Shown: positions 7,109 to 56,073, counted from the stretch's first letter. The stretch is DNA of 64,000 bases from Lepidodermella squamata (GCA_047495785.1 JBLDXI010000012.1:124001-188000), one strand, 5' to 3'. Numbers and translations: made by a program. Notes: generated from the sequence alone by a model not told the origin.

Positions 7109-7495
7109 TTAGTTAGGTGCCATCGGCTTGATGTTTTTTGCACTCGAAAGTCGCATTCCGTTGCGGATAATCATCGGATGTCCTCTGATCCATTTAACCT
7201 TCGGCCGAACTTCCGTTGAATTCAGCTTGCTGGTTACAACTCGAATCTTCTCGCGATTGAACTGCACACGCTGCGGATTGTTGTCTTGCCGCAACGTTTC
7301 GTTCCAGAACGTTTTCGCAACTTGTCTACTGGTTTCCTCCTCAGCGTGTGAGCTGTCATCATTCAGCCAAGTCAGAAATTTCTCCAAGCGGCGTTCACCA
7401 TTTTCTAAGCTCAAGGCATCTGACGACGTTTGGGTGCATATCAGGCCTCCTATGGCTAGGTGGAAGATCAAGGTGTGATAAACAGTTGGAAACAT
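7109..7495 (-). CDS. Small secreted protein/peptide precursor (GRP-motif family)
   Basis: Signal peptide; RR site; KVKWIRGHPMII motif. Confidence 0.75.
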   Translation of the reverse strand: MFPTVYHTLIFHLAIGGLICTQTSSDALSLENGERRLEKFLTWLNDDSSHAEEETSRQVAKTFWNETLRQDNNPQRVQFNREKIRVVTSKLNSTEVRPKVKWIRGHPMIIRNGMRLSSAKNIKPMAPN

Positions 7496-7790
7496 GTTGA
7501 AAGCTAGAAACTATACTGAAATGACCTGAGTCACTTTACGTAAAGCCACGTACACTGAGTTTGCTTTATTAATTTCCGCTTTCTCATTAGTGTTTCCTGC
7601 GAGCGAAGTGCTTACCCGGTTTGACCAAATAAGTTTCGCACTTTTACGGCTAGGTACTAGTTACTACTATCAGGTCATGACGACACTTTCCAACTTTATT
7701 ATTCCCAGAACGCCCACGGACTATGAATCAAAGGGTAAAGATTTTCCGAAAACTATTGCTAACAATGAAAAAGTGTAGCACTGGCTTGAC

Positions 7791-8210
7791 TCATTCATCA
7801 AAAAACAAGTCTTCCTCGCGATCGTTCGGCCCGTGCTCATGAGTTGAGTGGTGGACTTTATCGTTGGCAAATACGTCACGCATATCAAGAGAATCGAGCG
7901 CGTTTTCGTTGTTCATATGCGGGTAGGCTGACAGTGACGTGTGTTGCGGCGTTTCGTCCTGATGACGGCTTAAGGATCGAGGCAGAATGTAGGTGCCATC
8001 GATCAGGTAGTAACCATGTATGTCGTCAATTTCGTCATCGTCGTGCTCTTTCTCCGCTGATTCAACTGAAGAGTGACGATGGAGTAGCCCGGATATTGTG
8101 TTGAACGGGTTGTGAGAGCCAAACATTTTCGACGGCTTGTAAGGTCGGCAATCGATATTAGAGATACAAACAGCGACCAGAATGGCTAAAACTAGGTTAA
8201 ATCTCGTCAT
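7791..8210 (-). CDS. Small secreted His/Asp-rich protein (GYYL family)
   Basis: Signal peptide; LHRHSSVESAE and GYYLIDGTYILP are shared with the 8875 and 9755 ORFs. Confidence 0.85.
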   Translation of the reverse strand: MTRFNLVLAILVAVCISNIDCRPYKPSKMFGSHNPFNTISGLLHRHSSVESAEKEHDDDEIDDIHGYYLIDGTYILPRSLSRHQDETPQHTSLSAYPHMNNENALDSLDMRDVFANDKVHHSTHEHGPNDREEDLFFDE

Positions 8211-8874
8211 TTTTCTTGATTTTCACTAAAAAGGCTTGAAAATTGTTAAAAAATTGGCTCGGTTATTTGATTATAATGAAAAGGTGTAGAACGAGCATGC
8301 CCACTGGGCAACATACATCCGCGGCAAAGTCCGGGGATTTAGGGATTCCGCTGGTGACGCCTATGCAATATTCTCAATTCTTCATAAATATATCGAGTGC
8401 ATGCAAATTATTTGTATGTGTAAAATAGCTATACAAATCAATTTACAGCCACAAAGGACATTGCAGGGTAGTGTATATTCAATTAATAGAAACGATATTT
8501 AAACACCACGCATTGTCAACTTAAGTGGTAAAAACCGAAAAAAACAGGTAATGAAGCGGTAAAAGATTGATATGTCCGATGTCCGCTCACCTTTCCCGCT
8601 GAAAAATAGTTGTTTGTTTGGGACAGAAATCACGAAAATTGATTGCACCTGTTTGGCAGATTTGATTTTCGGCCAAGTAGCAACTCACTGCAGATTTGTA
8701 AATGTGAGAGTGCGGATATGATGATTCTTTTATCAATCGAATCCTGTATCCTGTCTGTGATAGTCTGAATCAATTACCGGTTTGCAAATAAATTTATTTC
8801 AAGTTCGTGATTCATGAGGGTCAGATTCAATTACTGCCCCTAGATCAAGTACTGCATCTCTGGGGTATATATTA

Positions 8875-9201
8875 TTATTTGTTTTCGTAGTAATAATAGT
8901 AATCATCAGATTCGTTGTCGACTGGCGCTGCTGGCTGCTGCGGCTGGACGTCATTAATCGGCGTCAAGTCATTCTCCTCGCTCGCGTCCCTAGCCGGCTT
9001 CACGGGGAAAAAGTACTGGCCATTAATCAGATAATAGCCGAACTCATTGTCCATGTCTGCACCAGCGTGATCTCGCTCAGCCGAGTCCCGTGACCTGTGG
9101 TGATGCAGGCCTTTCGATAAAGTAGAAAATCCTCGATTTTCACCAATCATTAAAGCGAGGATGATAAAACAAGAAAGCAATGTTACGGAGGACATGGTCA
9201 T
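8875..9201 (-). CDS. Small secreted protein (GYYL family)
   Basis: Signal peptide; LHHHRSRDSAE; GYYLINGQYFFP; poly-Tyr tail. Confidence 0.85.
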   Translation of the reverse strand: MTMSSVTLLSCFIILALMIGENRGFSTLSKGLHHHRSRDSAERDHAGADMDNEFGYYLINGQYFFPVKPARDASEENDLTPINDVQPQQPAAPVDNESDDYYYYYENK

Positions 9202-9754
9202 AACTTTGTAGCATCAATGAAATGTAGAACATTGGGTCTATGAAAGCAAATTTATTTATTCACTGACAAAAAGTGTCAGACAATCCTTTTCTTCACCATA
9301 CCCGAGGGAAAGTTATAACGCAAAACAAAATCAGTGTAAAAATGATTGGAGTGGATATTCGTACTCCAATAAGTACGCGTTTTTGACTTAGAAAGGGACA
9401 TCGGCTCGAAATGTTCTACTTTTCAAACTTAGTAAAGCTCAGGCGTCATCTGATTGGAAAAGGCGATTGAGCAGAACCTTTCAGATAGGTCAGGAAGCTC
9501 AAAATTCAGTTGTAATGATAAAATCAAACAAAAATAAGCTTTGTTGACAAGAGGCCAGTTTGTTTTTTCCAACCAGGTGGAGTTTGCGAGTCTTTAGCAA
9601 TTTTTTTTCAATTATCCGCTTCTGGAACCTCTTCTAAGTACAAAGACACGAAAATGCGTACCTATTCTAGTACGAGTATCCAATCCGAAATTTTATTAAA
9701 TGATAGATACCAGCATCCACAATACAATAGTTTACAGAGAATCAGATGCTCATG

Positions 9755-10009
9755 TTATTCCTTATCGAAAAGACCGTCCTTGAAGTAGACACTGTCTTCT
9801 AGGTCATCGAAAGCAGTCCGCGGCAGATGGAATTGGCCGTCAGCCATCAAAAACCCATGAACATCGTCATTCTCCTCGCCAGGATGAGGCAGTTCAGCTG
9901 AGGTCTCCGTATTGTGAACGTGAAGCGCACCAAGAGGAACAGCTTCACAGACGTTCGAAACACAGATCAGCAGTGCGCTGATGACCAAAATTACAATGGA
10001 TGATTGCAT
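9755..10009 (-). CDS. Small secreted protein (GYYL family)
   Basis: Signal peptide; LHVHNTETSAE; GFLMADGQFHLP. Confidence 0.85.
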   Translation of the reverse strand: MQSSIVILVISALLICVSNVCEAVPLGALHVHNTETSAELPHPGEENDDVHGFLMADGQFHLPRTAFDDLEDSVYFKDGLFDKE

Positions 10010-10181
10010 TAGTATATAGGATAATTTATTGCTACAACAGGGTTGGCGGAGTGAAAAACTGGAAAATTCCTCGCCGCGATTTCGCCTTTAAATCGATCTG
10101 GCGTATGAGTAGGCGACCATTTTCTCATAGCTCGATGGTTTTTAAGCGCTTACGCGAGCTGAAAAAAGCGCACGCCGGTTG

Positions 10182-10439
10182 CTAGGCTCTCTGTAATACG
10201 TCATCGTATCCACTTGGGTATCCGTATAGCTCTATATAGACCTGCCACTCCTCTGCGGACAATGGAGAACTAAGGAAGCGATTTCGGATATCCTGCAAAT
10301 CAAACTCAACATCATCGTCCTCCTCGTCTGGCTCTTCGAGTGGCCAGAGACGTTGCGCGTAGCCAGATAGCTCGCAACAACAGAAGACCACCCAACAGCA
10401 CAGGATGGCACCCACAAATGTTGAGTTTGATAGAATCAT
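10182..10439 (-). CDS. Small secreted acidic protein
   Basis: ATG at 10439, hydrophobic leader ending GYA, acidic EEPDEEDDD segment. Confidence 0.7.
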   Translation of the reverse strand: MILSNSTFVGAILCCWVVFCCCELSGYAQRLWPLEEPDEEDDDVEFDLQDIRNRFLSSPLSAEEWQVYIELYGYPSGYDDVLQRA

Positions 10440-10547
10440 TACGCTAAAATAAAACGAGACAGGGGGCGGCAACTGACCATGATTTACTCATTATCACTAT
10501 AATTGCAATCAATTTAAATTGATTTTTTTCAGAACTATCAGATAGTT

Positions 10548-10844
10548 CTACTGACGCGCTAATCTATTCGAAAGTTCTGCAGCCAGTTGTTGAACTGCCA
10601 AAATTTTGCGTTGTTGCGACTGTAAGTCGTCTGCATTTGTGATGATGCCTTGCTTTCGAAGTTGCGCCGCCAGTACTCTGTGAACCGGATCGAGAACTAC
10701 TGTTTGCGGTCCCAATTTCGCCTGCCAGTTGTATTTATAGCCCATGTTACCTTCTTGCGGCACGTAATCAGGCCGACGAGCCACCGTAACATCGTGAAAT
10801 TGTAAAAACAAGACGAAAGTAAGCGTCCAAATAAGCCCAGACAT
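10548..10844 (-). CDS. Small secreted protein (HWQ/helix family)
   Basis: Signal peptide; YNWQ...DP...LAAELSNR; paralog of 11120. Confidence 0.85.
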   Translation of the reverse strand: MSGLIWTLTFVLFLQFHDVTVARRPDYVPQEGNMGYKYNWQAKLGPQTVVLDPVHRVLAAQLRKQGIITNADDLQSQQRKILAVQQLAAELSNRLARQ

Positions 10845-11119
10845 TTCAGTAATATAAGAACGATATTTTGATGGATTGGGGGACTATTCCTGAGTTTTGT
10901 ATGCGTCGAGCCCACTCACGGTTGGTTTAATACTGTGTAGCTCTAACTCGTCGATAAATCAAGCGGTAATTTATGAGCCGAACTCAACTAAAAATTGAAT
11001 CAGCCGGGAGCGAAAAACAATAATTACGCATTCCGTCGATACTTTTATTCAATTCTGCGCTGCGCAAATCTGGTTTGATAATCATGATTTTGTGCTACAA
11101 CATCGGTCAGGCAATGGAA

Positions 11120-11467
11120 CTAGCCTGATTTTTGGGGACCTGGCCGTCGCATAACTCTAGATGCAAATTCCGCTGCTGCAACTCGAATTGCCTCCGCCCG
11201 CCGGTATTGAACCTCAATGCTGTCGGTTTCGGTGACTAAGCCCATTTTTTTCATTTGGTCGACAATCTTCCAGACTGCTGGGTCGTTAAATCGCTGGTTT
11301 AAATTAGCCCGTCCTTGCCAGTGGAAGGAGCCTGTTTGCGGGGTGCTGGTGTTGGCTTGAACGACGAATCGAGTCTTAGATTTGTTGATGTTGATAGGCA
11401 TTGGTAGGCAGACTACGTTAAGCAGAAGGAAACAGACGATTCCGGTCACTCTGAAGGCCATTTTCAT
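11120..11467 (-). CDS. Small secreted protein (HWQ/helix family)
   Basis: Signal peptide; KSKTRF; FHWQ...DP...AAAEFASR; terminal Gly. Confidence 0.85.
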   Translation of the reverse strand: MKMAFRVTGIVCFLLLNVVCLPMPININKSKTRFVVQANTSTPQTGSFHWQGRANLNQRFNDPAVWKIVDQMKKMGLVTETDSIEVQYRRAEAIRVAAAEFASRVMRRPGPQKSG

Positions 11468-11751
11468 TCAGAATACAGTATGTGACGATGAAACCAAAAT
11501 GTCAATGACTGACGGAGCGAAAAGAAGAGGATAAGGCTCTATATTCTCCGCACTTTTTCCCTGGATTTGAGATATTTTGAGCTTAAAATATTATTACGTC
11601 TGCTTTAATCTCACTCAATCGAGCTAATAGAAGGGCAATTGCGAATGGATGGAAATAGAACTGAGCTGAACGATTCAGCTTCCAATACGAGATAAATTTA
11701 CACGCACGAGTTCACTACGCAAATTTCAGTGAAAGCGGACATAACGAATCA

Positions 11752-11958
11752 TTAGTCGTAATCGACCGGTGCCTTGCCATTTCCTTGCCAAAACAGCCGC
11801 ATTGGAACGCTGTCATCGAAATTGGCATAGCTATGCAGTGGATGATTCATCAGGGCGTAATGGAAGATCGTAGATCGCTTTACAATATTGCAGGTTGCCA
11901 AATTCAGAGTAGCCATCAGCAGTACAAGGGAAAGAAGGAAAAACTGCTTAGCAAGCAT
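11752..11958 (-). CDS. Small secreted peptide precursor (WQ motif)
   Basis: Signal peptide; KR site; LFWQGNGK. Confidence 0.75.
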   Translation of the reverse strand: MLAKQFFLLSLVLLMATLNLATCNIVKRSTIFHYALMNHPLHSYANFDDSVPMRLFWQGNGKAPVDYD

Positions 11959-12899
11959 GTTGTTTTAAGATATTTTATGAATGTATGTTCATGAAGCGGA
12001 AAATTCGGAGTAATTACCAAGAATGGGTCATGATATTTGCCTGTCAATATTCCCATGTCAATACTGCTAAAAATAGACATCCATTGATTTTATGGAAATT
12101 AAAACTTCATTATCCTGTCATGTGATGATTTGTTGTGGCTGCTTTCGTCTCAGCGAAATTAGGAAGCGTCAAGTTATACATCTTACGCCATTTGTTTCCA
12201 TTCTAGGCGAGTTGTCCTAGGGGATAAAAGGCTCTAATGGATGCATAGGATACTAATTAGGATGAGGCTGCTCGGCTGTCATAGAGACGGTTTGGCATAG
12301 TTTTTACCATGCTCGAAGTTCTATATAAAAGGGCACAATTGTTACTTTTCCATCCGATTGTCCGAATTCCAGATGACCGCCGAAATGATGATGGAATTTT
12401 GGCAGCTTGACTTGAACATAGCTAACACTCGAGACGGATCCAATTTGGAACCCAGTTGAGATCGTGGCCCATGGTCATATAAGGAGTAATTACTAATTAC
12501 TTAGGTGCCTGGTGGATTTCACCAGGCCAAGTGTAACTTTAATAACAGCTAAAACGAACCCTGGTTTGCTCATTCGTGATTCGTGATTGCGTGAGTGAGA
12601 AAGGGATGACGAAAATGATAAGGAAGGTCTTTCTTTATACTCCGCACGTTCAATAGTTTTGACCAAAGAAGTGGAGCAGTGGGCGAGCAAATAATAGCAA
12701 TTCTATTTTACTGCACTTTGCCCTCAAATTTTACTAGGTAGGGATGTCGTGGTAATGTGGGATACGTGACGTCTTACAGTCAGCCATTTTGTGTCGCTGC
12801 AAATAGCTGTAATGTGGCATGTTTCCAAAATAAACCTAGCTGGTTTAATGCACCATGAGACCCCGGCAGATGTAATCTTGCCACGCCCAAAAAGCCGTG

Positions 12900-12907
12900 T
12901 ATAAAAG
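12900..12907 (+). promoter_or_regulatory. TATA box of the DUF1566 gene
   Basis: tataaaag ~50 nt upstream of the ATG at 12959; AATAAA at 14183-14188 downstream of the stop. Confidence 0.5.
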
Positions 12908-12958
12908 GTGGCTGTAAAAACGGTGTCATAATCAAGAAGTTTTTCTCTCAACGCGACA

Positions 12959-14095
12959 ATGACCTTGTTATTTCTGCTTGCGGCGATCTGCCTCACGGGG
13001 CAAAGTGCATCAGCTGGGTTGACGTACCCTATCGTCCACACTGGCATCGAAGAATTCACGAACGACATCACGTACATTACCAAGCCGAACCCAGGTCAGG
13101 CATTCTACGGCCAGGATGGTCACTACCCAGGCATTAAGGCCAGTTACAAGGACAACAATGACGGAACCGTGACTGATCTCGTCACCGGTCTTATGTGGCA
13201 AAAGTCAATGGGAAGCAAGATGCTCTACACCGCGGCCGTAGGTGCTGCTAATACTCTACGTCTCGGAAATTACGACGACTGGCGAATCCCGACTATCAAG
13301 GAGCTGTACTCTCTCATGCTCTTCACCGGTTACTACGGCACGTCATCGAAAAAGTTTATCGACGACGTTTTCGATCAGCCCTACGGCAACACTTCAGCCG
13401 GCGAGCGGGATTTCGATGCGCAAACGATGAGCTCGACCATGTACATGGGCTACGTTATGGGAAACAGCGAATGCAACTTCGGGGTCAACTTCATCGACGG
13501 CCGTATCAAGTGCTACCCGCGCAACAAAAATATCTACTTCAGGTTTGTCCGCGGCTCGACCAACTACGGATTTAACGACTTGATTTCAAACGGAGACGGA
13601 ACAGTCTCTGATCGGGCGACTGGTCTAGTCTGGCAGCAGTCTGATAGCGGTAAGGGTATGGAGTGGAAAGATGCGTTGGACTATTGCGAGAACCTTGTCC
13701 TGGCTGGCCGGGATGATTGGCGCCTGCCTAACGCGAAGGAACTGCAAAGCATTGTCGACTACAACCGAGGCCCGCAATCGACGAACACCGCCGCAATCAG
13801 CTCGCTGTTTCACTCCACTCAGATACCTGTCCCCAGCGGAGCGGCCAATGCTACGGAATTCGCTTTCTACTGGACCGGAACGACTCACAAGGACGGACCT
13901 CAGCCTAACATGGCGGCTTATGTTTGTTTTGGTCGCGCATATGGCAAAACCTCGTCTGTTATTGACGTCCACGGCGCTGGTGCCCAGAGGAGCGACCCGA
14001 AGAGCGCTCGCGGCCAAACCTACCCGCAATACTTCGGACCCCAGGGTGACTTGAGAACCGTCTACAACTTTGTCCGATGCGTTCGAAACGCGTGA
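12959..14095 (+). CDS. Secreted protein with two DUF1566 (Lcl-like) domains, bacterial type
   Basis: Signal peptide. Two repeats, DGTVTDLVTGLMWQ...DWRIPTIKELYSL and DGTVSDRATGLVWQ...DWRLPNAKELQSIVDY. C-terminal HGAGAQRSDPK...GPQGD...NFVRCVR. Intronless and visibly GC-richer than its flanks. Confidence 0.9.
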   Translation: MTLLFLLAAICLTGQSASAGLTYPIVHTGIEEFTNDITYITKPNPGQAFYGQDGHYPGIKASYKDNNDGTVTDLVTGLMWQKSMGSKMLYTAAVGAANTLRLGNYDDWRIPTIKELYSLMLFTGYYGTSSKKFIDDVFDQPYGNTSAGERDFDAQTMSSTMYMGYVMGNSECNFGVNFIDGRIKCYPRNKNIYFRFVRGSTNYGFNDLISNGDGTVSDRATGLVWQQSDSGKGMEWKDALDYCENLVLAGRDDWRLPNAKELQSIVDYNRGPQSTNTAAISSLFHSTQIPVPSGAANATEFAFYWTGTTHKDGPQPNMAAYVCFGRAYGKTSSVIDVHGAGAQRSDPKSARGQTYPQYFGPQGDLRTVYNFVRCVRNA

Positions 14096-14199
14096 AAATT
14101 GCATGGATTTTGGTGACGGGGCTTTTATTTATGCTGGTTCATAATATAAACATAATATTAAGCTGTCTCTCTATATCTTCTGAATAAAGCTTGCTGGTT

Positions 14200-14409
14200 T
14201 TAATAGTCAGCTCTTATGTTTTTTCCTGGGGGCTTGAGTTGCCATTGGAAATGATGGGCAGAGACGTCGCCGTTATCATGGTTGGCAGATATGTCATTCT
14301 CACCGCTTGCCAGAACGTACTTGGACTTGGGGCGTTTTGCTTCGATATCGCCCAAGAAAAGCAGTCCATTAAGGACTAGAAGAAGGATGATAGCTGAAAC
14401 GAATCTCAT
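14200..14409 (-). CDS. Small secreted peptide (KSK/HWQ family)
   Basis: Signal peptide; RPKSKYVL...HFQWQ; paralog of 14650. Confidence 0.8.
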   Translation of the reverse strand: MRFVSAIILLLVLNGLLFLGDIEAKRPKSKYVLASGENDISANHDNGDVSAHHFQWQLKPPGKNIRADY

Positions 14410-14883: not shown

Positions 14884-14985
14884 TTTCAAGCGGGATAGAA
14901 ACAACAAAAATGAAGTAAATTTTGGCAAGCCATTTCGCTTTTAAGAACTGTCATTTTTTTATTGTTATTTTCTAACAAAAAACCG

Positions 14986-17970: not shown

Positions 17971-18234
17971 TCAGCGCTGCTCAACTAGGAGAGGCCTGCC
18001 GTACATCCATTGAACGCGAGGCCGGTCGCTATCAATCGCGTTTCGGCTTGATCCAACTCGAACTATCTTTCGGGATGCATACCTGCGGCGTCTTTCAGGC
18101 TCTGCTTTCACGCCAACGAGTTTGCCGAGATCGAGACCTCTGCTGACCGCTAGCCAGTTGGCAGCACTCATGCTATCGGCCGTCGATGCAGAAATTACGA
18201 GTAGGACAGCAAAAATCATCAGGATATTGTTCAT
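17971..18234 (-). CDS. Small secreted peptide precursor (GRP-motif family)
   Basis: ATG 18234; signal peptide; RRR; DRPRVQWMYGRPLLV. Confidence 0.85.
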   Translation of the reverse strand: MNNILMIFAVLLVISASTADSMSAANWLAVSRGLDLGKLVGVKAEPERRRRYASRKIVRVGSSRNAIDSDRPRVQWMYGRPLLVEQR

Positions 18235-18937: not shown

Positions 18938-19255
18938 TTACGAGTTAGGTTGTACTACGACAGGTCGACCATAAATCCACTGTATCTTCGGTCGGTCTTC
19001 CGTTGGGGGTAGCCGGGCGGTTTTTAGCCGATTAATATTCTTAGCAGCGTACTTTCGATCTTCATTACTCGATTTGCTGTTCGATCGACTCTTCAACAGC
19101 CGGCTGCTTTCATCTGCTAACAACAGCCACGGTTTGCCGTAATTGTCCAAATACAGACCAACGACTGATTGAGACTGATCGGGAAGCTTCAATACAGAGG
19201 AACTTGCAAGGCAGATCATAGCGGCTAAGATCAAGAAATGAAAAATATGATCCAT
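18938..19255 (-). CDS. Small secreted peptide precursor (GRP-motif family)
   Basis: ATG 19255; signal peptide; DRPKIQWIYGRPVVV. Confidence 0.85.
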   Translation of the reverse strand: MDHIFHFLILAAMICLASSSVLKLPDQSQSVVGLYLDNYGKPWLLLADESSRLLKSRSNSKSSNEDRKYAAKNINRLKTARLPPTEDRPKIQWIYGRPVVVQPNS

Positions 19256-22377: not shown

Positions 22378-22656
22378 TCAATTAATAGGCCTCTCGTTGA
22401 AGCGGATGTATGTCAGCGGGCGGCCGCCGGCCATTAGTACATGACCGCCGGGAAATTGAACGCGTTCGATCGACTTGTTGTTGTCCATATTCGCAGCAAA
22501 AGTTTTACCTGCAACTGACGCCCGCCGGCCGCTATTTCCAAGAGCGCCGGCTAATTCACGGCTGGACAGCTCAGCGTAGTCTTCGAAATAGCCCGAGACA
22601 ACGGTGGTGATGAAGGCCAATATTAAAATAATAGCTAGGTGCACTCGAGTCATCAT
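22378..22656 (-). CDS. Small secreted peptide precursor (GRP-motif variant)
   Basis: Signal peptide; GRR; VLMAGGRPLTYI. Confidence 0.8.
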   Translation of the reverse strand: MMTRVHLAIILILAFITTVVSGYFEDYAELSSRELAGALGNSGRRASVAGKTFAANMDNNKSIERVQFPGGHVLMAGGRPLTYIRFNERPIN

Positions 22657-25768: not shown

Positions 25769-26128
25769 TCAGTCTTCATCGAACTCGTACGGCCCCAAGA
25801 CTTGATCGCCGAGAAAGAAGTTGCTGAACGTAGCCTTGTCAACATTGTCATACGGTGTTAAGTAGATTTCCTCACTTGAGGGCGAAACAACATTCTCCGC
25901 CTCGCCAGATATTTCCTCAGCGCTTAACATTGGCGCTGATGAATAATCCGTGTTTCGAATCGCCTTTTCTTTGTCGTAGAACATGTCGTTGAAGCTGTTC
26001 GGATTAGGCTGGCTCATCGGGGCTCGGTAGTAGAGACCAGGCGGGAATAACCGAGGGGAACATGTAGTGGGTAGAATTTGAAGCCATCCGAACAGGCTTA
26101 AAATAAGGGCGAAGTTACACCTACTCAT
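25769..26128 (-). CDS. Small secreted acidic protein
   Basis: Signal peptide; acidic/aromatic mature region. Confidence 0.8.
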   Translation of the reverse strand: MSRCNFALILSLFGWLQILPTTCSPRLFPPGLYYRAPMSQPNPNSFNDMFYDKEKAIRNTDYSSAPMLSAEEISGEAENVVSPSSEEIYLTPYDNVDKATFSNFFLGDQVLGPYEFDED

Positions 26129-26609: not shown

Positions 26610-27023
26610 TTATTCATCGAAAATACTACGCAATTCATCGGCGTTGTCATTCAGAAATTGGAATCGGCCCGTTGTGAAGGGGCGGGAGAGTGTCCACAAC
26701 TGCGCAACCGCGCCCTGGTTGTTTTGCTGATGTTGGCTCCTCGAAACGCTGTTTGACTGCTTATTACTGCTCCTCTGCTTATTCTGCTGCTGCTGCTGCC
26801 CCATCATCCTATTCATCGCGTCCAAGTGGCCGATTAGCGTTTGATAGCTTGGGTTTGTTAAATAGTCATTCAGCTCAGTGTCGAGGGACGAAAAAGGCTG
26901 AAAGTCGAAGTTTTCGTGGATGTTGGAGTTGAATTTCATAACTTTTGAGTCGGCGATAGGCTTGCAATCAGTTCCAAGCAACACTGAACAGGCCAATACA
27001 GCCAATGGGAGAAGTATTATCAT
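26610..27023 (-). CDS. Small secreted Gln/Asn-rich protein
   Basis: Signal peptide; poly-Q/N low-complexity segment. Confidence 0.8.
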   Translation of the reverse strand: MIILLPLAVLACSVLLGTDCKPIADSKVMKFNSNIHENFDFQPFSSLDTELNDYLTNPSYQTLIGHLDAMNRMMGQQQQQNKQRSSNKQSNSVSRSQHQQNNQGAVAQLWTLSRPFTTGRFQFLNDNADELRSIFDE

Positions 27024-28123: not shown

Positions 28124-28507
28124 TCAGCGCCGCCCGCGGCGAATGACAACCGGCCTGCCGTGTATCCACCGGACAATCGGACGGTCATCGTCAGTATTCG
28201 AGAACGCGACTGAATCATCTTCATCAAATTCCCTCGCTTTATCATCCTGAGGTGCCACAACAACTTGGCCGTTGTAGAAGGACCGCTGCCGCTTAGGCAT
28301 CACTGCATCGTCCACGCCGTGTGAATCATGCGTTATCGAATTGTATTGCTGTAGCTGCATGTCGAACCACCGCCTGAGCCGGGCATCCCGATCTAAATCG
28401 CTCGATTGGTAATAGCTATCGATTGGTCCGAATTGGTACTGCTCAACGGAATCATCGGCGAAAGCTTTCGCGAGAAAGAGTATCAAAAAAATTGTCTGCA
28501 AATGCAT
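28124..28507 (-). CDS. Secreted peptide precursor (GRP-motif family)
   Basis: ATG 28507; signal peptide; RR and KR sites; DRPIVRWIHGRPVVIRRGRR. Confidence 0.85.
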   Translation of the reverse strand: MHLQTIFLILFLAKAFADDSVEQYQFGPIDSYYQSSDLDRDARLRRWFDMQLQQYNSITHDSHGVDDAVMPKRQRSFYNGQVVVAPQDDKAREFDEDDSVAFSNTDDDRPIVRWIHGRPVVIRRGRR

Positions 28508-31366: not shown

Positions 31367-31627
31367 TCAATGGTCTCTAACAGGATATGGGACGCCTCCA
31401 ATCCATTGATACTTAGGTTTGTTACGGCCATTCGATGAAAAGCTGTTCCACGCAGCTCTTCGCACTAAATCAATCGAATCCGCCGCATTGTCGTCAGCAT
31501 CCTGCTCCTCCACTTCGAAGTCGGGAAGATAAACGCTGAGATCGGCCCTTTTGTTAAGGCGGATTGGCTGCGGGTGGCAGACGGCAATTACAAGAGCCGT
31601 GGTCAGAATGTAGCGTAAAACTCTCAT
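31367..31627 (-). CDS. Secreted peptide precursor (GRP-motif family)
   Basis: Signal peptide; KR and RR; KPKYQWIGGVPYPV. Confidence 0.85.
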   Translation of the reverse strand: MRVLRYILTTALVIAVCHPQPIRLNKRADLSVYLPDFEVEEQDADDNAADSIDLVRRAAWNSFSSNGRNKPKYQWIGGVPYPVRDH

Positions 31628-37267: not shown

Positions 37268-37576
37268 CTACATGCGAGTTTCGCGTATGACGTAGGGTTT
37301 CCCAGCGACCCAATGGACGTTCCTGCTAACGCTGAGTTTGCCTTGCTGAACATTCGAGGCTGGTCTGCTGCGTTTCGCCATGAAATACGGCATGAATCCG
37401 AGACTGGGCTCGCTTTGTTGCACGGTATCAGGGGCGAAGAATGAATCCTGATCGTTCGCCATTTGATAGAACGCGTCCGAGTCGTATTCTTTGATATTGG
37501 ACGGCTCTACGGACATGTACGGCACTTCTGCCGAGACGGCTAAAATTACACTGGCAAGTATCAAAATTCTAATCAT
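37268..37576 (-). CDS. Secreted peptide precursor (GRP-motif family)
   Basis: Signal peptide; acidic pro-region; KR; NVHWVAGKPYVI. Confidence 0.85.
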   Translation of the reverse strand: MIRILILASVILAVSAEVPYMSVEPSNIKEYDSDAFYQMANDQDSFFAPDTVQQSEPSLGFMPYFMAKRSRPASNVQQGKLSVSRNVHWVAGKPYVIRETRM

Positions 37577-38259: not shown

Positions 38260-38628
38260 CTATATTAGTGTAAAAGGAGAGGTGGAAAATGTACTAATCG
38301 TAATCTTCTTGATTATGACCCCGTGCATAGCGTACCAGTCACTGCTGGACGGGTCAAAAGCGTCTTGCTGAAAGGTATTTTGGCCCAGTTTGGATAGGAT
38401 ATAGGCCTGAATTTCACTCTCGAGAAATCCGTAGAATTCATCAAGCAAAATCTGGTCATCCGATGGCAGCTCTTCTTCGCTACCGTGTTCTGAATTAAGC
38501 TCGGTAGGCTCTAGCCAGTAGCTGTGAACATCGTCATAGGCCGACGGCCGGCGTGGCGAGCAAATGGCGCCGCTGCAGATCACCGACAAGATAACACAGC
38601 AAATCAGTGGCGCGCAATTAATTTTCAT
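38260..38628 (-). CDS. Small secreted acidic protein
   Basis: Signal peptide; acidic mature region. Confidence 0.75.
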   Translation of the reverse strand: MKINCAPLICCVILSVICSGAICSPRRPSAYDDVHSYWLEPTELNSEHGSEEELPSDDQILLDEFYGFLESEIQAYILSKLGQNTFQQDAFDPSSSDWYAMHGVIIKKITISTFSTSPFTLI

Positions 38629-42534: not shown

Positions 42535-42957
42535 TTATTTTCGAACAGCGGCTACGATTTTGTAAGGACGGCCGTTGATATATCGGATCTGGTTGCTTTC
42601 CTTGCCGCGTTTCTGGAAGTTGTCGAAAGTGTAACGGCCTCGCTTTTCCTCCTCGCCTGATACGAAATCGCCGCCGAACAGCCAGTCAGAGGCTGATCGG
42701 CGATCTCGCCACGCCGTGCTTTTCACCGAGCTCCAACCGCGCTTCATAACATCACCCCTCCAGTTGCCGCTCTTCTTCTTCTCGCGCCAGCCTCGCTTGT
42801 CGAACGGCTGGAATGTCATGCCGTCTTCAGTCAGCTCCCACCGCCCCGAACTTGCTCGCTTGGCAACTGAATGCGAGTTGACACCTGAAAAAGCTTCACT
42901 CAAAACAACCACTGCCACTGTGGCGACAACAATAACAGATTTGTATGAAAGCGACAT
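42535..42957 (-). CDS. Multi-peptide (Trp-rich) neuropeptide-like precursor with GRP motif
   Basis: Signal peptide; five KR plus RR/KKK sites; KR-GW twice; QIRYINGRPYKI. Confidence 0.88.
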   Translation of the reverse strand: MSLSYKSVIVVATVAVVVLSEAFSGVNSHSVAKRASSGRWELTEDGMTFQPFDKRGWREKKKSGNWRGDVMKRGWSSVKSTAWRDRRSASDWLFGGDFVSGEEEKRGRYTFDNFQKRGKESNQIRYINGRPYKIVAAVRK

Positions 42958-45715: not shown

Positions 45716-46039
45716 ATGATGAGCTTGAATATACTCCTTGCAACGTTTCCTATCCTAATCATCGCCCTAGCATCTGCTGCTAAGGATCCTAAAGAAAAAA
45801 ATGGGCTGTACAAAAAACCATTGCTATCGATTTTACTGGATAAAAGCCAAAAACCTGCAGAGCCAATAGACACGAGACCTTCCAGACGATTTGTCGATCA
45901 TCATCAGACGACGACCCCAAAAACGACAACGACTACGCCACGGCCCATCATTGAACCGCTCAATTTCGATCGTAAATACGATTTACAAGTCAAGTGGTAT
46001 GCTGGTAAAATGTTTGTCATCCGCCATAAAGTTGATTAA
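45716..46039 (+). CDS. Small secreted protein (GRP-motif variant)
   Basis: Signal peptide; Thr-rich linker; QVKWYAGKMFVI. Confidence 0.82.
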   Translation: MMSLNILLATFPILIIALASAAKDPKEKNGLYKKPLLSILLDKSQKPAEPIDTRPSRRFVDHHQTTTPKTTTTTPRPIIEPLNFDRKYDLQVKWYAGKMFVIRHKVD

Positions 46040-48446: not shown

Positions 48447-49371
48447 TATATATATAGTACTAGTTCAGGAGCCATAGTAGGAGTCAAAAGGAGCCATAGG
48501 AGCCAAGATCAAAACCTCTGCTAATAATCGATTTCCCCAACATCCATTATAAGTTCGAAGTCCAATTATCTATGGCCTATAGTTTTAAAAGCTGTTCGTT
48601 TTCAGCTTTACACAGCTCTGCAAGGTCCAAAGATGGCAATTTTCTCATCTTCGTATCGATTTGTGTTTTAGCTGTCAAGGAACTAGGAAACGGGGCGAAC
48701 TAACACAACCTAAAATTCGTTCAATCTTTGGAACAAATCTCAAGCGGTTGAAAATGTTCCCTTCCTAAACCAGACCACATTACTCAATTTAGGCCAGATT
48801 GTTGGATTTTGGATGAAATTTTCTTATTTATCGAATTTCAAAAATGTCCTGAACGAAAATGTGTTTTCGAATTTTCCCCAAGATTCGTGGTCAAATAAAA
48901 ATAAATTTAGACTAAATTATCCTAATTTTTCCACTTCAATTCATTCTTCATTAGATTACTGCATTGGCTTTTGAAATTATTAATCATTTGAAAATTTGAC
49001 TTAATCTGCTTCAGAACCGAAAAATTATTAATTTTGCTTCGATTTCGGCTTTGAATGCTATGCAAGATAGCTTATTTGACCACAGTGTGAATGCATTTGG
49101 ACTATTTGGACTATAGAAGACAGAAGACCGTAATAAAAAAATATGGGCTGATGATTAATCCCTGCTTCATTTTCCAGTACATACACACCAAATTCCTACT
49201 GAGCTGCGCAAAAGAAGAGAAGGATGGAGAACGCAATACTTTTTATGCGTGTATATTCACTGAGCTGCAGCTCCCCTATGATCATCGTATACATCAGCCG
49301 TTGGTATTAATAAATACGCAAGACTCTGCATTCATTTTTTCTTCTGCGCCCGCATTTTTCGCCTCTCAAGC

Positions 49372-52203
49372 ATGTTCACCGCAAGCGATCAGTACGAGGT
49401 TAAGCGACAATTGGGCAGTGGTGGCTTCGGTTTCGCCTACCTGGTTCAGCAGCGAGGTGTTGCCGAAAATGGCTACGTCAACGAACGGCTCTACGTCATT
49501 AAGGAGGTTAATCTAGCCCGGTTGGAAGCAAGTTACGCCGGCGATGAGGCGAATCAGGCCAAAGTTCGTAAATACACGTTCGACGAGGCTGAAATTATGA
49601 AATCGCTCGATAATCGTAATATCGTCAAAGTTTACAGCTCATTTCTCGAGGGCGATATTTTTCGAATTGCCATGGAGTACTGCGACTCTGGCACGTTGAA
49701 AGATGTGATAATAGCTCAACGCGGCGTGCCATTTGCCGAAACGCAAATTCGCCACTGGATGGCTCAATTGGTCACGACGTTGAAATTTCTGCATAATCGA
49801 AGAATTTTACATCGAGATGTCAAAGCTGAGAATGTCTTCCTAGCCGCTAATAAAACTATAGTCAAGCTCGGTGATTTCGGCATAGCTAAATCGATGAATA
49901 AGTAATGCTGGTAAAAATTAATACATTTTTATTAATTTTTTCTGGATTTTTCAGCACCTCAGTCGGCCACACTTTCATAGGGACTCCTACCCATATGCCT
50001 CCTGAATTACTTCGCGGTGAAGATTACACTTACAAGTCAGAAGTTTGGGCCCTTGGAGTGCTACTTTACGAATTAATCGCTCAACGTTTACCTGTAAATT
50101 GCGAAAAAAATCCCAACAACATTTTTTGGATATTTTCCCAATTTTTCAGTTTACCGGAAATAATTTTGGAATAATATTTCAGCTCATCATGGGGTGAGTT
50201 ATGCCTCTGTAAAAATTTTTGAAATATTTTTTGTCAATTTTTCTAGACCTGAGCCAGCGCCGTCCTTGCCAACCTCATACAGCTCGGATCTCCGAGAACT
50301 CGTTGAGAACAAAATGCTCAACAAAAATATGGAAGAGCGGCCAACAATGTTGGAAATTATCGGCGAATCTTTTATACTTCAAACCATCGCAGAGATGGCA
50401 AATTTTCAAAAATCTCATCACCCAGCTCCAGTGGCAGTCATCATCCAGCCAGAGGTTCCACAAGTGCCAAGCAATCCGTCTAGACCTGTAAGCGTTTTTG
50501 GATTTTGGTCAAAAACCTATAAAGAGGATTCCAACACCAAATTTATCGAAAATTATGTGTTTGAATTTCAATTTTTTTGTTATCCGGCCAACCGATACTC
50601 CTCACTATTCCGCACATTTTCCGCCAATTAAGACTTGAAAATACATTTCTGTCCGCAGGGCCGATATCGATTTGAAGTATCGATTTCGAAAATAAGTGAT
50701 TTTTCCGATATTAGCTTTCTAGGAAGCCAATATTTAAAAGTCTCCACAGCGTGTAAAATGAGATGCGAAGTCATATCTCATGGCCAGAAAAATCTTAGAA
50801 AAAGTCTAAAACGCCGTAAGAATAGTAATCAGGTATGTCTCATGTGAAAGAGATTAAAAAAATCCGAAGAAATTTAATCCAACCAGGTAAAAACCAAACT
50901 ACCGAACCATTTACCATCAGGATTTTTAGGGTTTTCTCCAGTAAGTTTTCGATTTCTTCGGTAAAATCGTGGATAAAGGATGGACGATTCTCCCCGTGGG
51001 CTTAATTTCAAAAAATTAGGTCAATGTCTTTAAGGTTTTTTTGAAATTACAAAATGATTGCACTACTTATGGTACACACTGTACACACCCGAGGGTACCA
51101 GGCAGGCAGCCTTTCATAAAAACCGGGGTCATAATGTTATCATTATAGATCAAAAGAGAAAATTTTGAAATTGCAAAAAATCGAACAATTTAGTGCTGGA
51201 ATTTTAACTTTATTAGCGCAAATATTTTACGCTTTTTTTTAATAAGGTGCATGACCTGTTAAAAGCTGCGCAAGACGGAGATTTGCTAACAGTACGTGAC
51301 ATAGTCACATCGTTCAATCAAGATCAGCTGACGTCACCTGAAACGTGGTCACGAGCCCCGGGAAATGCAGACAACGACACCCCGCTTCACTTAGCAGCCT
51401 GGCGTGACCAGATCGACGCTGTCAAGCTAATGTGGCCCCAGATGTCAGGACTAGCAGTATGGCAAAACAACGACAAACAGGCGCCGATTCATTTAGCCGC
51501 CCTCAGTAATGCGAAACGCGTCGTCGAGTTTTTCCTAGAACAAAAGCCGGAAATTGTCGAGCTGAAAAGTGATTATCTAGGCCGAAATGCTTTACACGCC
51601 GCTGCCGAGCGTGGACACCTTGATCTATGCAAAATTCTTGTCTCAAAATTTAAGGCGGATGTTTTCGCTAAGACAAATCAGGAAGATGGGGAGAAACTAG
51701 CCATTCATCTCGCTGCATTTTGCGGCCATGTTAATATCGTCAAATTCCTACTTGAAACTTGCCCGTATCTGATCGATGCTCGAACTGGAGATGGCGATTG
51801 GCCTATTCATTTGGCTGCAATTGGAGGTCAGGTTAAAGTCGTCGAATTCCTCATATTACAGCGAGGGTTGAATCCTAATGTTAGGAATGACAAATACGGA
51901 AGAACAGCTCTTCACCTAGCCTGCGAATTCGGCCATCTTGAACTCGTCGAACGATTAGTCCTTACCCTAAAAGCTGACATTTGGGCTGAGACTAAGGTTG
52001 AAGATTTCAAAAAATTGCCGATTCACATGGCGGCGTGGCAGGGCAGATTTGATATTGTCAGATTCCTGATTGGTTACCAGCCTAAACTTGCCGATGCGAA
52101 GGATTCTCAGGGCTTCACGCCGTTACTACGAGCTCAAGCAAGTGGAGAAATCAATCAAGCGAGACAGATTGTCGATTATCTAGAATCTCTACCACCGATA
52201 TGA
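49372..52203 (+). CDS. NEK-like Ser/Thr kinase fused to C-terminal ankyrin repeats (exons 49372-49901, 49955-50093, 50150-50193, 50247-50487, 51247-52203)
   Basis: GSGGFG, YVIKEV, HRDVKAENVFL, KLGDFGIAK and GTPTHMPPE motifs. About 8-9 TPLHxAA-type repeats. A phase-0 donor at 50488 matches the acceptor at 51246; the ankyrin ORF starts at GTG right after AG. Confidence 0.8.
50659..50730. repeat. Partial copy of the atcgat dispersed repeat, in the kinase intron
   Basis: gccgatatcgatttgaagtatcgatttc...gatttttccgat matches the 56964 copy. Confidence 0.6.
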
Positions 52204-52291
52204 ATTTTTATTCAATGACCGAGCCTTAATAAAATGACAATTTTTTGAATAATCTAAAATATTTTATCTACGTCCTCCGGGTTGCGATTGT

Positions 52292-52678
52292 TTACATTCG
52301 CGACCTTGCAAAGTAGCGTTGACGGCTGCCGGCTTGAACAGGAATTACTTGCCCCGGTTCAGCGGCTTGATCCTTGGTTTCGTTGTTTCCAGCGCCATCA
52401 GTTACGCGGAAAGGGCGGCCATTGATGAATCGAATAGGGACGTAGCTGTTAGACCGATCGTCAGTCTCCTCCTCCTCCTGAGGTTCGTCGTAAGTTTTCG
52501 GGGCGATAACGTTTCCAAATAATGGCTTGTTATTCTGGCGGTTATTAAGGAAGATGCGGAAAAAAGCTTCCTCATCAACAGGTCGAACGTCGTCGCTTAG
52601 AAAATCATCATCATCAGCTGAGGCGTGTTTGAAAATCACGCAAAGCACAAAAACAGCGTAATAGCCCAAAAATTGCAT
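52292..52678 (-). CDS. Secreted peptide precursor (GRP-motif family)
   Basis: ATG 52678; signal peptide; acidic region; PIRFINGRPFRV. Confidence 0.85.
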   Translation of the reverse strand: MQFLGYYAVFVLCVIFKHASADDDDFLSDDVRPVDEEAFFRIFLNNRQNNKPLFGNVIAPKTYDEPQEEEETDDRSNSYVPIRFINGRPFRVTDGAGNNETKDQAAEPGQVIPVQAGSRQRYFARSRM

Positions 52679-53135
52679 AATAACAAATCTTGAGAAATAT
52701 ATATCAAGCGATAAACCTAGAAAAACACACAATTCTGCGAAAGTCGAAGATCAAAAATGGCAGATGAATAAAAAAAGATGATCATATTCCATTAGGATAA
52801 TCTCCCATGGGTGACCATTAGTTGTTTTTTTCGAGAGCCTAAAAGCCTGTAATGTTTCGCCTATCGATTTCATGCGGCTAAATGTATTCGTTCTCGACGT
52901 GACGTAGGCGAAAAAACGTAAGTCATTACAGCGTGACCCAAATTTAATTGCCGATGATCGTATCAATTACGCGCTCATTGACGCGTGAAAAATGTTCCGC
53001 CTGAGTTCCACAAAATGAAAAAAATGCTCCGTTTATTTCGCCCTCATGATTCAGAAATCAATATATTATGTATTTTTTTTAATTAAAATATTTCCTAAAA
53101 TGCTTATTAGCTAAGGATATTGTGGGTGATTTTTT

Positions 53136-53492
53136 TTAATAATTGTTGTTGTAGACTTTGTAAGGTCGGCCATCGATTACTTTCATCTGATAGCCATTTT
53201 TCGAATTTCCGCCGATCGCATATTGCTGTCGCCGCCTGTTGACGATAGGGCCGTCGTAGTTGTCCTCGTTATTGAGGTAGAGGGTGGCAGCTGGACCGGT
53301 TCTTAGTCCAAGACCGCTTCTTCGCCGATTTCCGAAAATTCCGCCGCCGCCCATTCGAAGGACGTTGAATCGGTTAGCGGACGGTAGGACCAAATCGGCA
53401 TCGGGCATGTCGCATCTCACCTCGATAATTTGCAGCAAAATCAAGCTGCTAAGAAGAGTTAGAGAGATACAGGATGCAGCAGACTGATGCAT
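53136..53492 (-). CDS. Secreted peptide precursor (GRP-motif family)
   Basis: Signal peptide; two RRR sites; QMKVIDGRPYKV. Confidence 0.85.
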   Translation of the reverse strand: MHQSAASCISLTLLSSLILLQIIEVRCDMPDADLVLPSANRFNVLRMGGGGIFGNRRRSGLGLRTGPAATLYLNNEDNYDGPIVNRRRQQYAIGGNSKNGYQMKVIDGRPYKVYNNNY

Positions 53493-54525
53493 TTTTTCAG
53501 CGAAAATTATATTCTAGAAAAAAAACAGAAAAATTAGAAATTTCGACATGCCAAAGGCGCGTAATGATTAGTGCACTTTGAAATACTTGATCTTCTATTT
53601 TAAGGGCCGCGGGCCATTTGCGTAGGGTGTTTTGGTCAATACTTATGAAATGATTGACATAAAGAAGAGAAGCGCTACTTAATTTTATTCAAATCGACAC
53701 TTTCCCAAGAAAAACTAACATGGCGCGTGGGCATATATTTGGTGGTAGGAAATTATGAGTCAGGCGATGAAACAGGCCCAGGGTCTTCTATATAACAACT
53801 ATTCCGACGAGGATTAAATCGGCATTACAGTTAGCGAGAGGGATAAGCCAAACAATAATATATTTTTACAACAGTTTTCACCAAAAAAAGGAAATGAAGG
53901 GGAAAATTTAAGCAAGCGTGGATGAGTGTTCGATATTTTCAAAGATTGTTTACGAGTATTGAGTTCATTTCTCATGCGATTTATTATTAAGGAATCGAAA
54001 TAAACCAATCTATAATAGCTGGATATCACGCGAGGACATGGCCGGATGTTCGCAAAGGATACTCATATCCTGTGAAATTGACCCACGTCCGCACGTGATT
54101 AAGCAGTCGACTTATTTCAAATAGGTGATGTGTCCATTTTGGCTCAGGTCAGAATATTTAGCACTGCCTGAGAGAGTTTAGGTACTTTGACAGACCGAGA
54201 AACGAGGTAAAAATCGTAAAAATTAAATTATTTGAAAAATATCAGATCTTTCTGAAGCAGCGATGTTCTAATATAACAGGCTATAAAACCCGCCATGAAA
54301 CTGTTCAACTTGACTTGAATCTAATTATGCAAAATTGGCATTCTGTATAAAAAAATCAAGAGAGTGAAGAAAACGTGACAGCATCACAATATTATTTTCT
54401 TTTTTTGATCATTCGATTTTGAAAAATTCAAATTTTTCTTTTTTAATTGTTTATATAAAACATACGAAGTTATTTCTTATATATTGTTTTGATAAAATTG
54501 TTTTTTTTCCAAATTTAGGATTTCG

Positions 54526-54608
54526 GGTTAGAGGTTAAGGTTTTCAGAGTCAGGGTTAGGGTTTTGGGGATAGGATATGATTAAGGCTGAGGTTAGGGTT
54601 AGGGTTAG
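54526..54608 (+). repeat. Degenerate TTAGGG-like interstitial repeat
   Basis: ggttagggttagggttag plus degenerate units. Confidence 0.6.
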
Positions 54609-54929
54609 CCGAATTGACAGGAAAATTTGCTACTGCGTCGACAAAAGGCTCAAAATTGAGAGTTAAAAACGATTGAGGTCAAAATGTAAATTCCAGTCTT
54701 GATGATTTCAGCAAAGCGTGGGAACATTTTATAACCTCAAATTAATTACGATAAGAATAGAATGTACTGGGAATTAAAAACCTCCAATCACTCAGGTGGG
54801 AGGAGATACCGGTGAGAATAACTTCATTCCGCTTGCCTGTAATATTGTCTCTTTTTACTCGAAATCGAAATCAAGGGGTTCAAAATTTAGTTAATTATCA
54901 CAAATTATATTAGGATGTTCCTGTTCCTG

Positions 54930-55217
54930 TTAGTCATCATTGATTCTCCGCATTAGGTTGTAGGCGTAGCGAGCCTTGGCGAAATTGAGGGGCGTAAATC
55001 GTTGCCGATTGCCATTTTGCAATCGCCTTGCATCAGGGCTTTTCGATTTCGCCTTCTCCTTCACGCTGTTTGGATCGAAGAAATACCCACCACTGTCATC
55101 GTAAGATCGCCTATTACGAAGAAGGCTACTGGTGGCTGATACTTGATTATCGCTGATAAAAATCAGACAGATTAAACCCAAAATTAGACGGGAGAATAAA
55201 GTCCTGAAAATTCTCAT
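54930..55217 (-). CDS. Secreted peptide precursor
   Basis: Signal peptide; RNRR and two more RR sites. Confidence 0.8.
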   Translation of the reverse strand: MRIFRTLFSRLILGLICLIFISDNQVSATSSLLRNRRSYDDSGGYFFDPNSVKEKAKSKSPDARRLQNGNRQRFTPLNFAKARYAYNLMRRINDD

Positions 55218-55406
55218 TTTCCGATCTGCGAAAATTTTTGCTTTGAACCTGATGACTTCATGAAGGGGCCCAAGTAGAACAAAGTTGTAGGCGTAGCAAT
55301 TTAAATTTTATTTCCAAATCAATTAGCTTCAAGTATTTAGCTGCGCAACTTCTGCATGGACAGTGCGATTAGTTGGCGCAAATGGGCTATTTAATTATTA
55401 ATTGCT

Positions 55407-55676
55407 TCATTGGCGACCTCGGAAGACACGGCCTTTTATGAAGCGAATGACGTAAGGCTGCTTCTGCGATGAGGCGGCTGAATTGTCCTCGTATTCAGCG
55501 CTTGGCTTTGTTGTCCAGGGCGACATTGGCTGATCTAGCAATAACAGATCTTCATCATCAGGAATTTCGCCTCGATTTCTGGGACGAAGGTCAAGCCGTT
55601 GTCTGTTTTGCGCAGCCTCGCAGCATGCAAAAATAATTATGAAAATTATAAAAAAATTGAAATTCAAAACTCTCAT
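55407..55676 (-). CDS. Secreted peptide precursor (GRP-motif variant)
   Basis: ATG 55676; signal peptide; YVIRFIKGRVFRGR. Confidence 0.82.
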   Translation of the reverse strand: MRVLNFNFFIIFIIIFACCEAAQNRQRLDLRPRNRGEIPDDEDLLLLDQPMSPWTTKPSAEYEDNSAASSQKQPYVIRFIKGRVFRGRQ

Positions 55677-55803
55677 CGTCAAAACTGAAAAATGTGATTA
55701 TGCGCCATAAATTTTTAATTTTATTTCTAGGCATGAAAAATTTCATTTCCGCGTGGAAAAATTTGGCAACGATTTTTTACAGGATGTTAGAGTTTGATCG
55801 CCT

Positions 55804-56073
55804 TTATTCGCCGTCGTTATTTTTCAGCCTATACGGCCGTCCGTGGAGAAATCGCAGGTGCGATGGGGGCAGCAGTGCTGCGTCGCCATCCCGGTTACTA
55901 TTTGTTGAATCAACAGCAGCGATTGCTAACTTGACCAGCTGAAACTGCTTGGCTAATCGTCTGTCGTTGAGTTGCTCCGCATCGTCGTCCTCCTCCCAAT
56001 ACGCCCTAACTGCTGGGGCGATAAAAATAGTAAACAATAGCAGCAGCACAGATATTCTAGCGATAAAATGCAT
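55804..56073 (-). CDS. Secreted peptide precursor (GRP-motif family)
   Basis: Signal peptide; acidic stretch; RR; HLRFLHGRPYRL. Confidence 0.85.
   Translation of the reverse strand: MHFIARISVLLLLFTIFIAPAVRAYWEEDDDAEQLNDRRLAKQFQLVKLAIAAVDSTNSNRDGDAALLPPSHLRFLHGRPYRLKNNDGE

Follow-up and report, generated by a model that had tools for sequence, protein, structure and literature searches.

A 64-kb stretch of the genome of the gastrotrich Lepidodermella squamata (C12:124001–188000, here called the window, in an assembly of 121 Mb and 151 contigs) encodes 13 members of a family of small secreted proteins that share a 12-residue motif near the C-terminus, predicted to fold as a cysteine-free β-hairpin. 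The family as we define it has 17 members, all within C12:74–259 kb (185 kb) and 16 of them on the minus strand. On sequence evidence it appears to be previously undescribed, matching no curated family, and its members are best read as diverged tandem paralogues of one lineage-restricted family. Coordinates below are those of the window unless a contig is named.

The members lie in a cluster of secreted proteins, with approximately 200 small orphan genes over at least 260 kb. Across C12:44–308 kb (264 kb) we counted 217 open reading frames (ORFs) with a signal-peptide-like start, judged from a hydrophobic N-terminal stretch in the translation, and approximately 7.1–56 kb of the window is filled with small ORFs of this type, mostly on the minus strand. 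The original prediction had quoted 13 motif strings here, under coordinates that are ORF boundaries; the 12-residue motifs sit inside those ORFs. All 13 strings were present in the ORFs named, each of which is small (84–140 amino acids), single-exon and opens with a signal-peptide-like start, and a profile scan of the ORFs showed that no further instance in the window had been missed. Comparison with shuffled controls, the check proposed for the motif, placed it far above chance. In a six-frame translation of the window the strict pattern [WFY][IMLV]xG[RK]Pxx[VIL] matched eight times; in 100 dinucleotide-type shuffles the mean was 0.19 and the maximum 2. A looser pattern matched 13 times against 1.15. 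Eight of the 217 signal-peptide-like ORFs carry the strict pattern, compared with 0.03 when residues are shuffled within each protein. The motif is also near the C-terminus, as had been claimed: it ends 2–9 residues before the stop in 14 of the 17 members and 13, 18 and 36 residues before it in the other three.

A family profile of 17 columns, run on the whole genome in six frames, recovered the 13 window genes together with C12:74101, C12:116521 and C12:259138, and a pattern scan added one more member, C12:215684. The search of the genome with a motif model that had been suggested thus took the form of two profile searches, in which only C12 members scored above approximately 18 bits. When every ORF of C12:44–308 kb was scored locally with the profile, the distribution was bimodal, with 16 members at 18–25 bits and LMAGGRPLTY (22378) the weakest at 13.9 bits. 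One short ORF lacking an export signal scored 15.2 bits (WAHGRP, which recurs nearby) and is probably a repeat rather than a family member; the remaining matches fell below 8 bits. When the genome was searched for DNA encoding I-N-G-R-P-[YF], three C12 genes and two sites elsewhere matched, against nine for the reversed control pattern. The off-cluster matches (on C11 and C15 for the pattern, on C45 and C48 for the weak profile hits) were set aside as chance, with neither an export signal nor DNA similarity; one of them sits in a retroelement-like ORF, and neither of the two pattern sites is a family gene. The whole-genome profile search also had a chance-level hit on C15.

Short motifs also connect the family to other genes of the cluster. 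C12:96415–96732 ends in VWINGKAFKL, and its relatives at 112088 and 113300 of the same contig end in Q-N-G turn variants. A second motif, D-[DE]-V-H-[GS]-[YH]-x-[LF], is found soon after the signal peptide in C12:74089–74376 (twice), 96415–96732, 112088–112369 and 162260–162628 (38260–38628 of the window), and of these four proteins, three have a hairpin-like motif with an N-G turn at the C-terminus. Because the N-terminal motif is common to C12:74089 and to cluster genes with an N-G turn, the family may be slightly larger than 17 and its short motifs mosaic.

Column statistics over the 17 members refine the motif to [IV]-[RKQ]-[WF]-[IV]-x-G-[RK]-P-[YFLV]-[KRV]-[VI]-R. The glycine is invariant (17/17), while proline, arginine or lysine, and tryptophan, phenylalanine or tyrosine are each found in 15 of 17. 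In 10 of 17 members the glycine follows N, D, G or H, all of them favourable at the start of a type I′ turn. Two flavours of the motif can be told apart: one built on tryptophan ([QKR]-W-[IM]-x-G-R-P followed by three aliphatic residues), mostly at C12:116–170 kb, and one of the form I-R-F-I-N-G-R-P-[YF]-K-V, mostly at C12:166–259 kb with a further occurrence at 74 kb. This regional split fits local duplication. The codons at the conserved residues are scrambled (all four are used for glycine, five for arginine and all four for proline), so constraint acts on the protein; the conservation is protein-level and old, and not the trace of recent gene conversion or of a DNA element. Outside the motif similarity between members is almost nil, the exception being the pair 17971/18938 (E = 5e-10 over 36 amino acids) along with a few weak pairs. 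The claim that the motif is conserved while the rest of each protein diverges is therefore upheld.

The description of the proteins as otherwise unrelated precursors is the less good reading. They occupy one 185-kb stretch, all but one on the same strand, and have a common architecture in which a single ORF encodes a signal peptide, a variable region, the hairpin and a short tail; genes that agree in location, strand, structure and order of domains look like paralogues rather than unrelated genes. A hydrophobic N-terminal stretch is present in all 17, the mature part is free of cysteine in 16, and no hairpin contains a cysteine. Between the signal peptide and the hairpin lie 50–100 fast-evolving residues that, from the structural models below, are probably disordered. 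An independent origin of the motif in unrelated genes, or a merely compositional or chance pattern, would suit proteins that cannot be aligned outside the motif, and a bacterial-looking protein with four similar MVQW[VIL]NG repeats (P0001, described below) suggests that such a hairpin can arise elsewhere. We nevertheless consider this very improbable, given an enrichment of at least 40-fold over shuffles, the confinement of identically built genes to one stretch and almost entirely one strand, the relationship of the adjacent genes 17971 and 18938 at BLAST level beyond the motif, and the N-terminal motif that links C12:74089 to cluster genes ending in N-G-turn variants.

The structures of two members, 18938–19255 and C12:74089–74376, were modelled using AlphaFold2 with the 17-protein alignment. 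In both models two five-residue strands joined by the x-G pair fall exactly on the motif, and the predicted local distance difference test (pLDDT) score is 93–94 for the 10-residue block that holds most of the hairpin; in 18938–19255 the strands span residues 90–94 and 97–101, with a pLDDT of 93 for block 91–100. Each model also has a confident N-terminal helix, corresponding to the signal peptide, and a low-confidence middle region (pLDDT approximately 50–60). These predictions agree with the β-hairpin around an x-G turn that had been proposed. The motif is predicted to fold as a 2:2 hairpin, in a register that would set the aromatic residue opposite the proline, with the flanking isoleucine or valine residues on the same face and the conserved basic residues on the other.

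Where families of secreted precursors diverge, it is usually the mature active peptide that stays conserved. Since the hairpin is the only block constrained at the protein level, we tentatively favour, by analogy, the view that it forms the partner-binding core of a processed C-terminal peptide. Under this scheme the peptide would be released from the secreted precursor by convertase-type cleavage at upstream dibasic sites, the middle region would be a disposable propiece, and the hairpin, as the active end of the released peptide, would bind a partner, with the peptide acting as a ligand or as an antimicrobial or effector peptide. Upstream dibasic pairs are in excess across the 17 members, with 34 observed against 24 ± 3.9 in shuffles (p approximately 0.006). 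The hairpin is basic, with a net charge over its 12 residues that averages +2.7 (range 0 to +5); 11 of 17 members are at +3 to +5 and six at 0 to +2.

Several observations weigh against this view. The last dibasic site lies anywhere from 4 to more than 60 residues upstream of the hairpin, at no fixed distance, and three of the 17 members have no dibasic site at all. The tails vary from 2 to 36 residues, and no consistent C-terminal glycine amidation signal was found in the family, only the RGRR tail of 28124 being readable as one. Four hairpins carry a charge of only 0 to +1, and being nearly uncharged they fit poorly with a general membrane-active peptide. The hairpin itself is a prediction, both AlphaFold2 runs draw on one shared alignment, and ESMFold2 without an alignment gave a pLDDT below 50 for a 32-residue fragment. 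No orthologue emerged from the searches for relatives described below, so that conservation is known among paralogues of one genome, and the peptide, its receptor and its activity are putative. Two specific processing schemes were also considered and rejected: asparaginyl-endopeptidase-type cleavage between N and G, as N or D precedes the glycine in only six of 17 members, and the pairing of an anionic propiece with a cationic peptide as a general rule, as middle regions carry anything between −12 and +8.

The absence of a fixed cleavage site beside the hairpin would suit proteins that stay whole, with the hairpin anchoring varied disordered chains to a shared extracellular partner or, by strand pairing, to each other, as in cuticle or scale, egg-shell or adhesive material. 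We regard this as the main rival, although a somewhat unlikely one. The hairpin terminates long, diverse and probably disordered chains, and the 17 paralogues keep the same tag while the ‘payload’ differs; the predicted pairing would also create one hydrophobic face (aromatic, proline and isoleucine or valine) and one basic face. Several proteins of the cluster that lack the motif (7791–8210, 9755–10009, 25769–26128 and 26610–27023, all on the minus strand) have acidic-aromatic tails (such as ...LFFDE, ...GLFDKE, ...YEFDED and ...SIFDE), a possible second class of C-terminal motif with a charge opposite to that of the hairpin, and such tails are possible counterparts for docking. On the other hand, the middle regions have neither recognizable constraint nor repeats of the structural-protein type, the partner is only hypothetical, and a complex prediction for two 32-residue hairpin fragments, made without an alignment, scored 0.02, which speaks neither for nor against binding.

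A further reading, which we hold to be unlikely, is that the cysteine-free 12-residue hairpin is a new kind of autonomous extracellular recognition tag, borne by 17 different secreted proteins and read by one partner common to them all. Candidates for the partner are a matrix component of the gastrotrich cuticle or adhesive and a receptor, for instance one encoded by the divergent Cys-loop channel-like genes at the cluster edge. If true, this would be a natural modular system of tag and payload that evolved de novo in one animal lineage. Alternatively, the hairpin might serve as a sorting or condensation signal, directing precursors to a particular secretory granule or gland product with no role after release. 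In keeping with this, the hairpin is a short, structured loop in secretory proteins that otherwise lack structure, a formal resemblance to sorting signals of the loop type in some vertebrate prohormones. However, only approximately 17 of the approximately 200 secreted-protein genes of the cluster carry the hairpin, which as a signal is therefore not general to the class, and we judge a sorting role quite improbable.

Among known systems, the family would work most like lineage-restricted clusters of secreted peptide precursors, such as those of the Hydra arminin/periculin and Caenorhabditis elegans nlp/cnc types. These too are small tandem genes in which a fast-evolving propiece follows the signal peptide and a short, often cationic, C-terminal block is conserved, with no relatives outside the lineage. 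The present family differs in having no sequence similarity to them and no fixed cleavage or amidation site, and in a conserved block that is a predicted cysteine-free β-hairpin. The conserved core in turn looks most like cationic β-hairpin peptides or N-G-turn tryptophan zippers. The antimicrobial peptides tachyplesin, protegrin, arenicin and thanatin are likewise hairpins of 12–20 residues, rich in arginine or lysine and aromatic residues and C-terminal in a secreted precursor, but they are locked by one or two disulfides, whereas the family hairpins lack cysteine, range in charge from 0 to +5, carry a proline after the turn and show no homology. Designed hairpins of the trpzip and Asn-Gly type I′ kind share the length of 12 residues, cross-strand aromatic packing, and a basic residue after a turn of the x-G (often N-G) type; the family hairpins are natural, sit within longer secreted proteins and are predicted to face the aromatic residue with proline rather than with a second tryptophan. 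Classical neuropeptide and prohormone precursors also have a signal peptide, upstream dibasic enrichment and only a short block conserved among paralogues. Here, however, the block is not flanked by dibasic sites, and there are no repeated copies, no amidation signal and no Pfam neuropeptide match. The family thus lacks what defines classical neuropeptide precursors (flanking cleavage sites and amidation) and what defines disulfide-locked hairpin antimicrobials (cysteines).

Searches for relatives elsewhere were almost entirely blank. None of the 17 members had a Pfam match near any gathering score, and a profile search of the sequences in the Protein Data Bank (PDB) gave no match at E values up to 10. 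A word-indexed protein search with the 17-protein alignment yielded 1274 candidates, none at E up to 1, and the same type of search with the single protein 53136–53492 found no match; exact look-ups of two members matched no record, which carries little weight. In metagenome contigs, 22 stretches matched the pattern [IL]R[FY][IVY]NGRP[YFL][KR], none of them confirmed by tblastn, and the best scores in an ESM Atlas feature search (0.83) lay inside the range of shuffled proteins. A single copy of the motif carries at most approximately 28 bits and so cannot reach significance among 1.84 billion proteins; a blank is not proof of absence, and with gastrotrich data scarce these negatives are weak evidence. 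An exhaustive profile search of those 1.84 billion proteins gave one significant match, P0001 (E = 9e-7), a 181-amino acid orphan encoded at positions 712–1257 of a metagenome contig (L021), with four MVQW[VIL]-[NA]-G-x-x-[LIV] repeats in a chain rich in lysine, glutamate and proline. The contig is of bacterial type, and two clostripain-like (Peptidase_C11) genes follow shortly downstream of the P0001 gene; no relatives of the protein were found in a collection of 5.8 billion proteins. The repeats match the family profile, but P0001 has four copies, no signal peptide and the basic-proline pair in one repeat only, and the likeness is probably convergent.

Evidence for transcription came from contigs of four public runs over 50800–56700 (5.9 kb). 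One run, likely DNA (X1), covers this region evenly, whereas X2 and X3 cover genes only; over the intergenic segment 53558–54739 the depth is 87 in X1 but 0–2 in X2 and zero in X3. Contigs of X2 stop in T-runs at 53016 and 54833, the poly(A) tails of minus-strand genes. With coverage confined to genes and T-run ends, X2 and X3 behave as RNA, though the run record is silent on type. Four family members lie in the region; 52292, 53136 and 55407 are well covered by RNA-like contigs (for 52292–52678, X2 and X3 contigs span 52227–52659; for 55407–55676, one X2 contig spans 55353–55710) and 55804 is covered thinly. The mRNA of 53136–53492 runs from approximately 53515 to the poly(A) site at 53016, with no intron joint reported. 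At 53515, at the 5′ end of this gene (53493–53516), contigs of both X2 and X3 continue into the same 21–23 letters, not encoded there in the genome (TCTGCGAATTTGATTTGTGTCTA in transcript sense). The 23-mer is absent from the window but has 45 copies in the genome, some of them arrayed with a period of approximately 680 bp (C17:1137309–1142026, C19:1472966–1476087 and C54:2837689–2839197). Such a leader is characteristic of spliced-leader trans-splicing, and the mRNA of 53136–53492 is both trans-spliced and polyadenylated. In most members a T-rich tract runs up to an AG 10–40 bases ahead of the start codon, and in many an AATAAA follows the stop within 150 bases; each gene reads as one coding exon with a splice acceptor ahead of it.

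Each of three runs shows two allelic contig versions of part of this region, with 18 differences in 207 positions at 52227–52433 and seven in 172 at 53199–53370, and heterozygosity or strain divergence at 52227–53370 is therefore very high. In one allele contig over 52292–52678 the hairpin residues 82–92 are unchanged, while upstream there are three synonymous changes, one Y-to-F replacement and the deletion of one codon; this pattern agrees with constraint on the hairpin, as weak evidence. A search of the assembly for a second haplotype contig suitable for dN/dS estimation found none, only an intergenic satellite matching.

The individual window members are described here in order along the window; the strand is minus unless stated otherwise, and bit scores are those of the family profile. 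The gene 7109..7495 encodes 128 amino acids with the hairpin VKWIRGHPMIIR at 7163–7198, followed by an 18-residue tail (20.9 bits, no Pfam match). It is followed by the related pair, 17971..18234 (87 amino acids from the ATG, with a signal-peptide-like start; hairpin VQWMYGRPLLVE at 17980–18015; 22.2 bits) and 18938..19255 (105 amino acids; IQWIYGRPVVVQ at 18950–18985; 24.7 bits), the latter being one of the two modelled by AlphaFold2. The 91-amino acid protein of 22378..22653 is the weakest member and a doubtful one, since its VLMAGGRPLTYI at 22405–22440 has no aromatic residue at the W/F position (E = 1.3, 13.9 bits). An acidic middle and the tail RGRR mark the 127-amino acid product of 28124..28507, with the hairpin VRWIHGRPVVIR at 28139–28174 (22.8 bits). 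In 31367..31627 (86 amino acids, 18.8 bits) valine replaces the arginine or lysine of the hairpin, YQWIGGVPYPVR at 31376–31411, and 37268..37576 (102 amino acids, 18.4 bits) carries VHWVAGKPYVIR at 37283–37318.

The longest member of the window, 42535..42957 (140 amino acids, 23.5 bits), has several upstream KR sites, and its hairpin, IRYINGRPYKIV at 42553–42588, begins six residues past one of them. The sole plus-strand member is 45719..46039 (106 amino acids, 18.6 bits), in which methionine replaces the proline of the hairpin VKWYAGKMFVIR at 45989–46024. The longest tail (36 amino acids) belongs to the 128-amino acid protein of 52292..52678, with IRFINGRPFRVT at 52400–52435 (20.2 bits), the gene with RNA-like contigs and two alleles. 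The gene with the spliced-leader mRNA and poly(A) tail, 53136..53492, encodes 118 amino acids and the hairpin MKVIDGRPYKVY at 53151–53186 (21.6 bits). Two 89-amino acid proteins complete the set: 55407..55676, which has a degenerate hairpin, IRFIKGRVFRGR at 55413–55448 (18.3 bits), and is covered fully by one RNA-like contig, and 55804..56073, with LRFLHGRPYRLK at 55822–55857 (18.5 bits) and thin RNA-like coverage.

Other genes are found at the edge of the cluster and within it. Three tandem multi-exon copies on the plus strand at 800–7000, at the cluster edge, give weak matches to Neur_chan_LBD, the ligand-binding domain of Cys-loop receptors (E = 0.003–0.035, below the gathering score). At 12959–14095 (plus strand) lies an intact ORF of 378 amino acids with an export-type start and a strong match to the Lcl C-terminal domain (PF07603, E = 6e-43), most known examples of which are bacterial; the gene has a paralogue approximately 88 kb away at C12:224892–226037 (plus strand) and is possibly a horizontally acquired lectin-like gene. 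Exons of a protein-kinase domain interrupt the secreted-protein cluster at 49091–50631 (plus strand), and an intact ankyrin-repeat ORF of 318 amino acids, covered by the RNA-like runs, lies inside it at 51247–52203 (plus strand). A short intergenic repeat at approximately 54475–54610 has approximately 77% identity to satellite-like arrays on C13, C21, C33 and C46, with a periodicity of approximately 42–48 bp elsewhere.

This genome has many orphan families of secreted proteins; the hairpin family is one of them and a well-defined example of the kind of orphan that is common in poorly sampled animals. It is among the few sets of genes in the cluster with a clear constrained element. A naturally selected 12-residue hairpin that folds without disulfides would be of interest for peptide structure and design. 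Gastrotrichs are almost unexplored molecularly, and the family offers an entry point into the role of the cluster, be it in defence, in signalling or in the making of secreted material.

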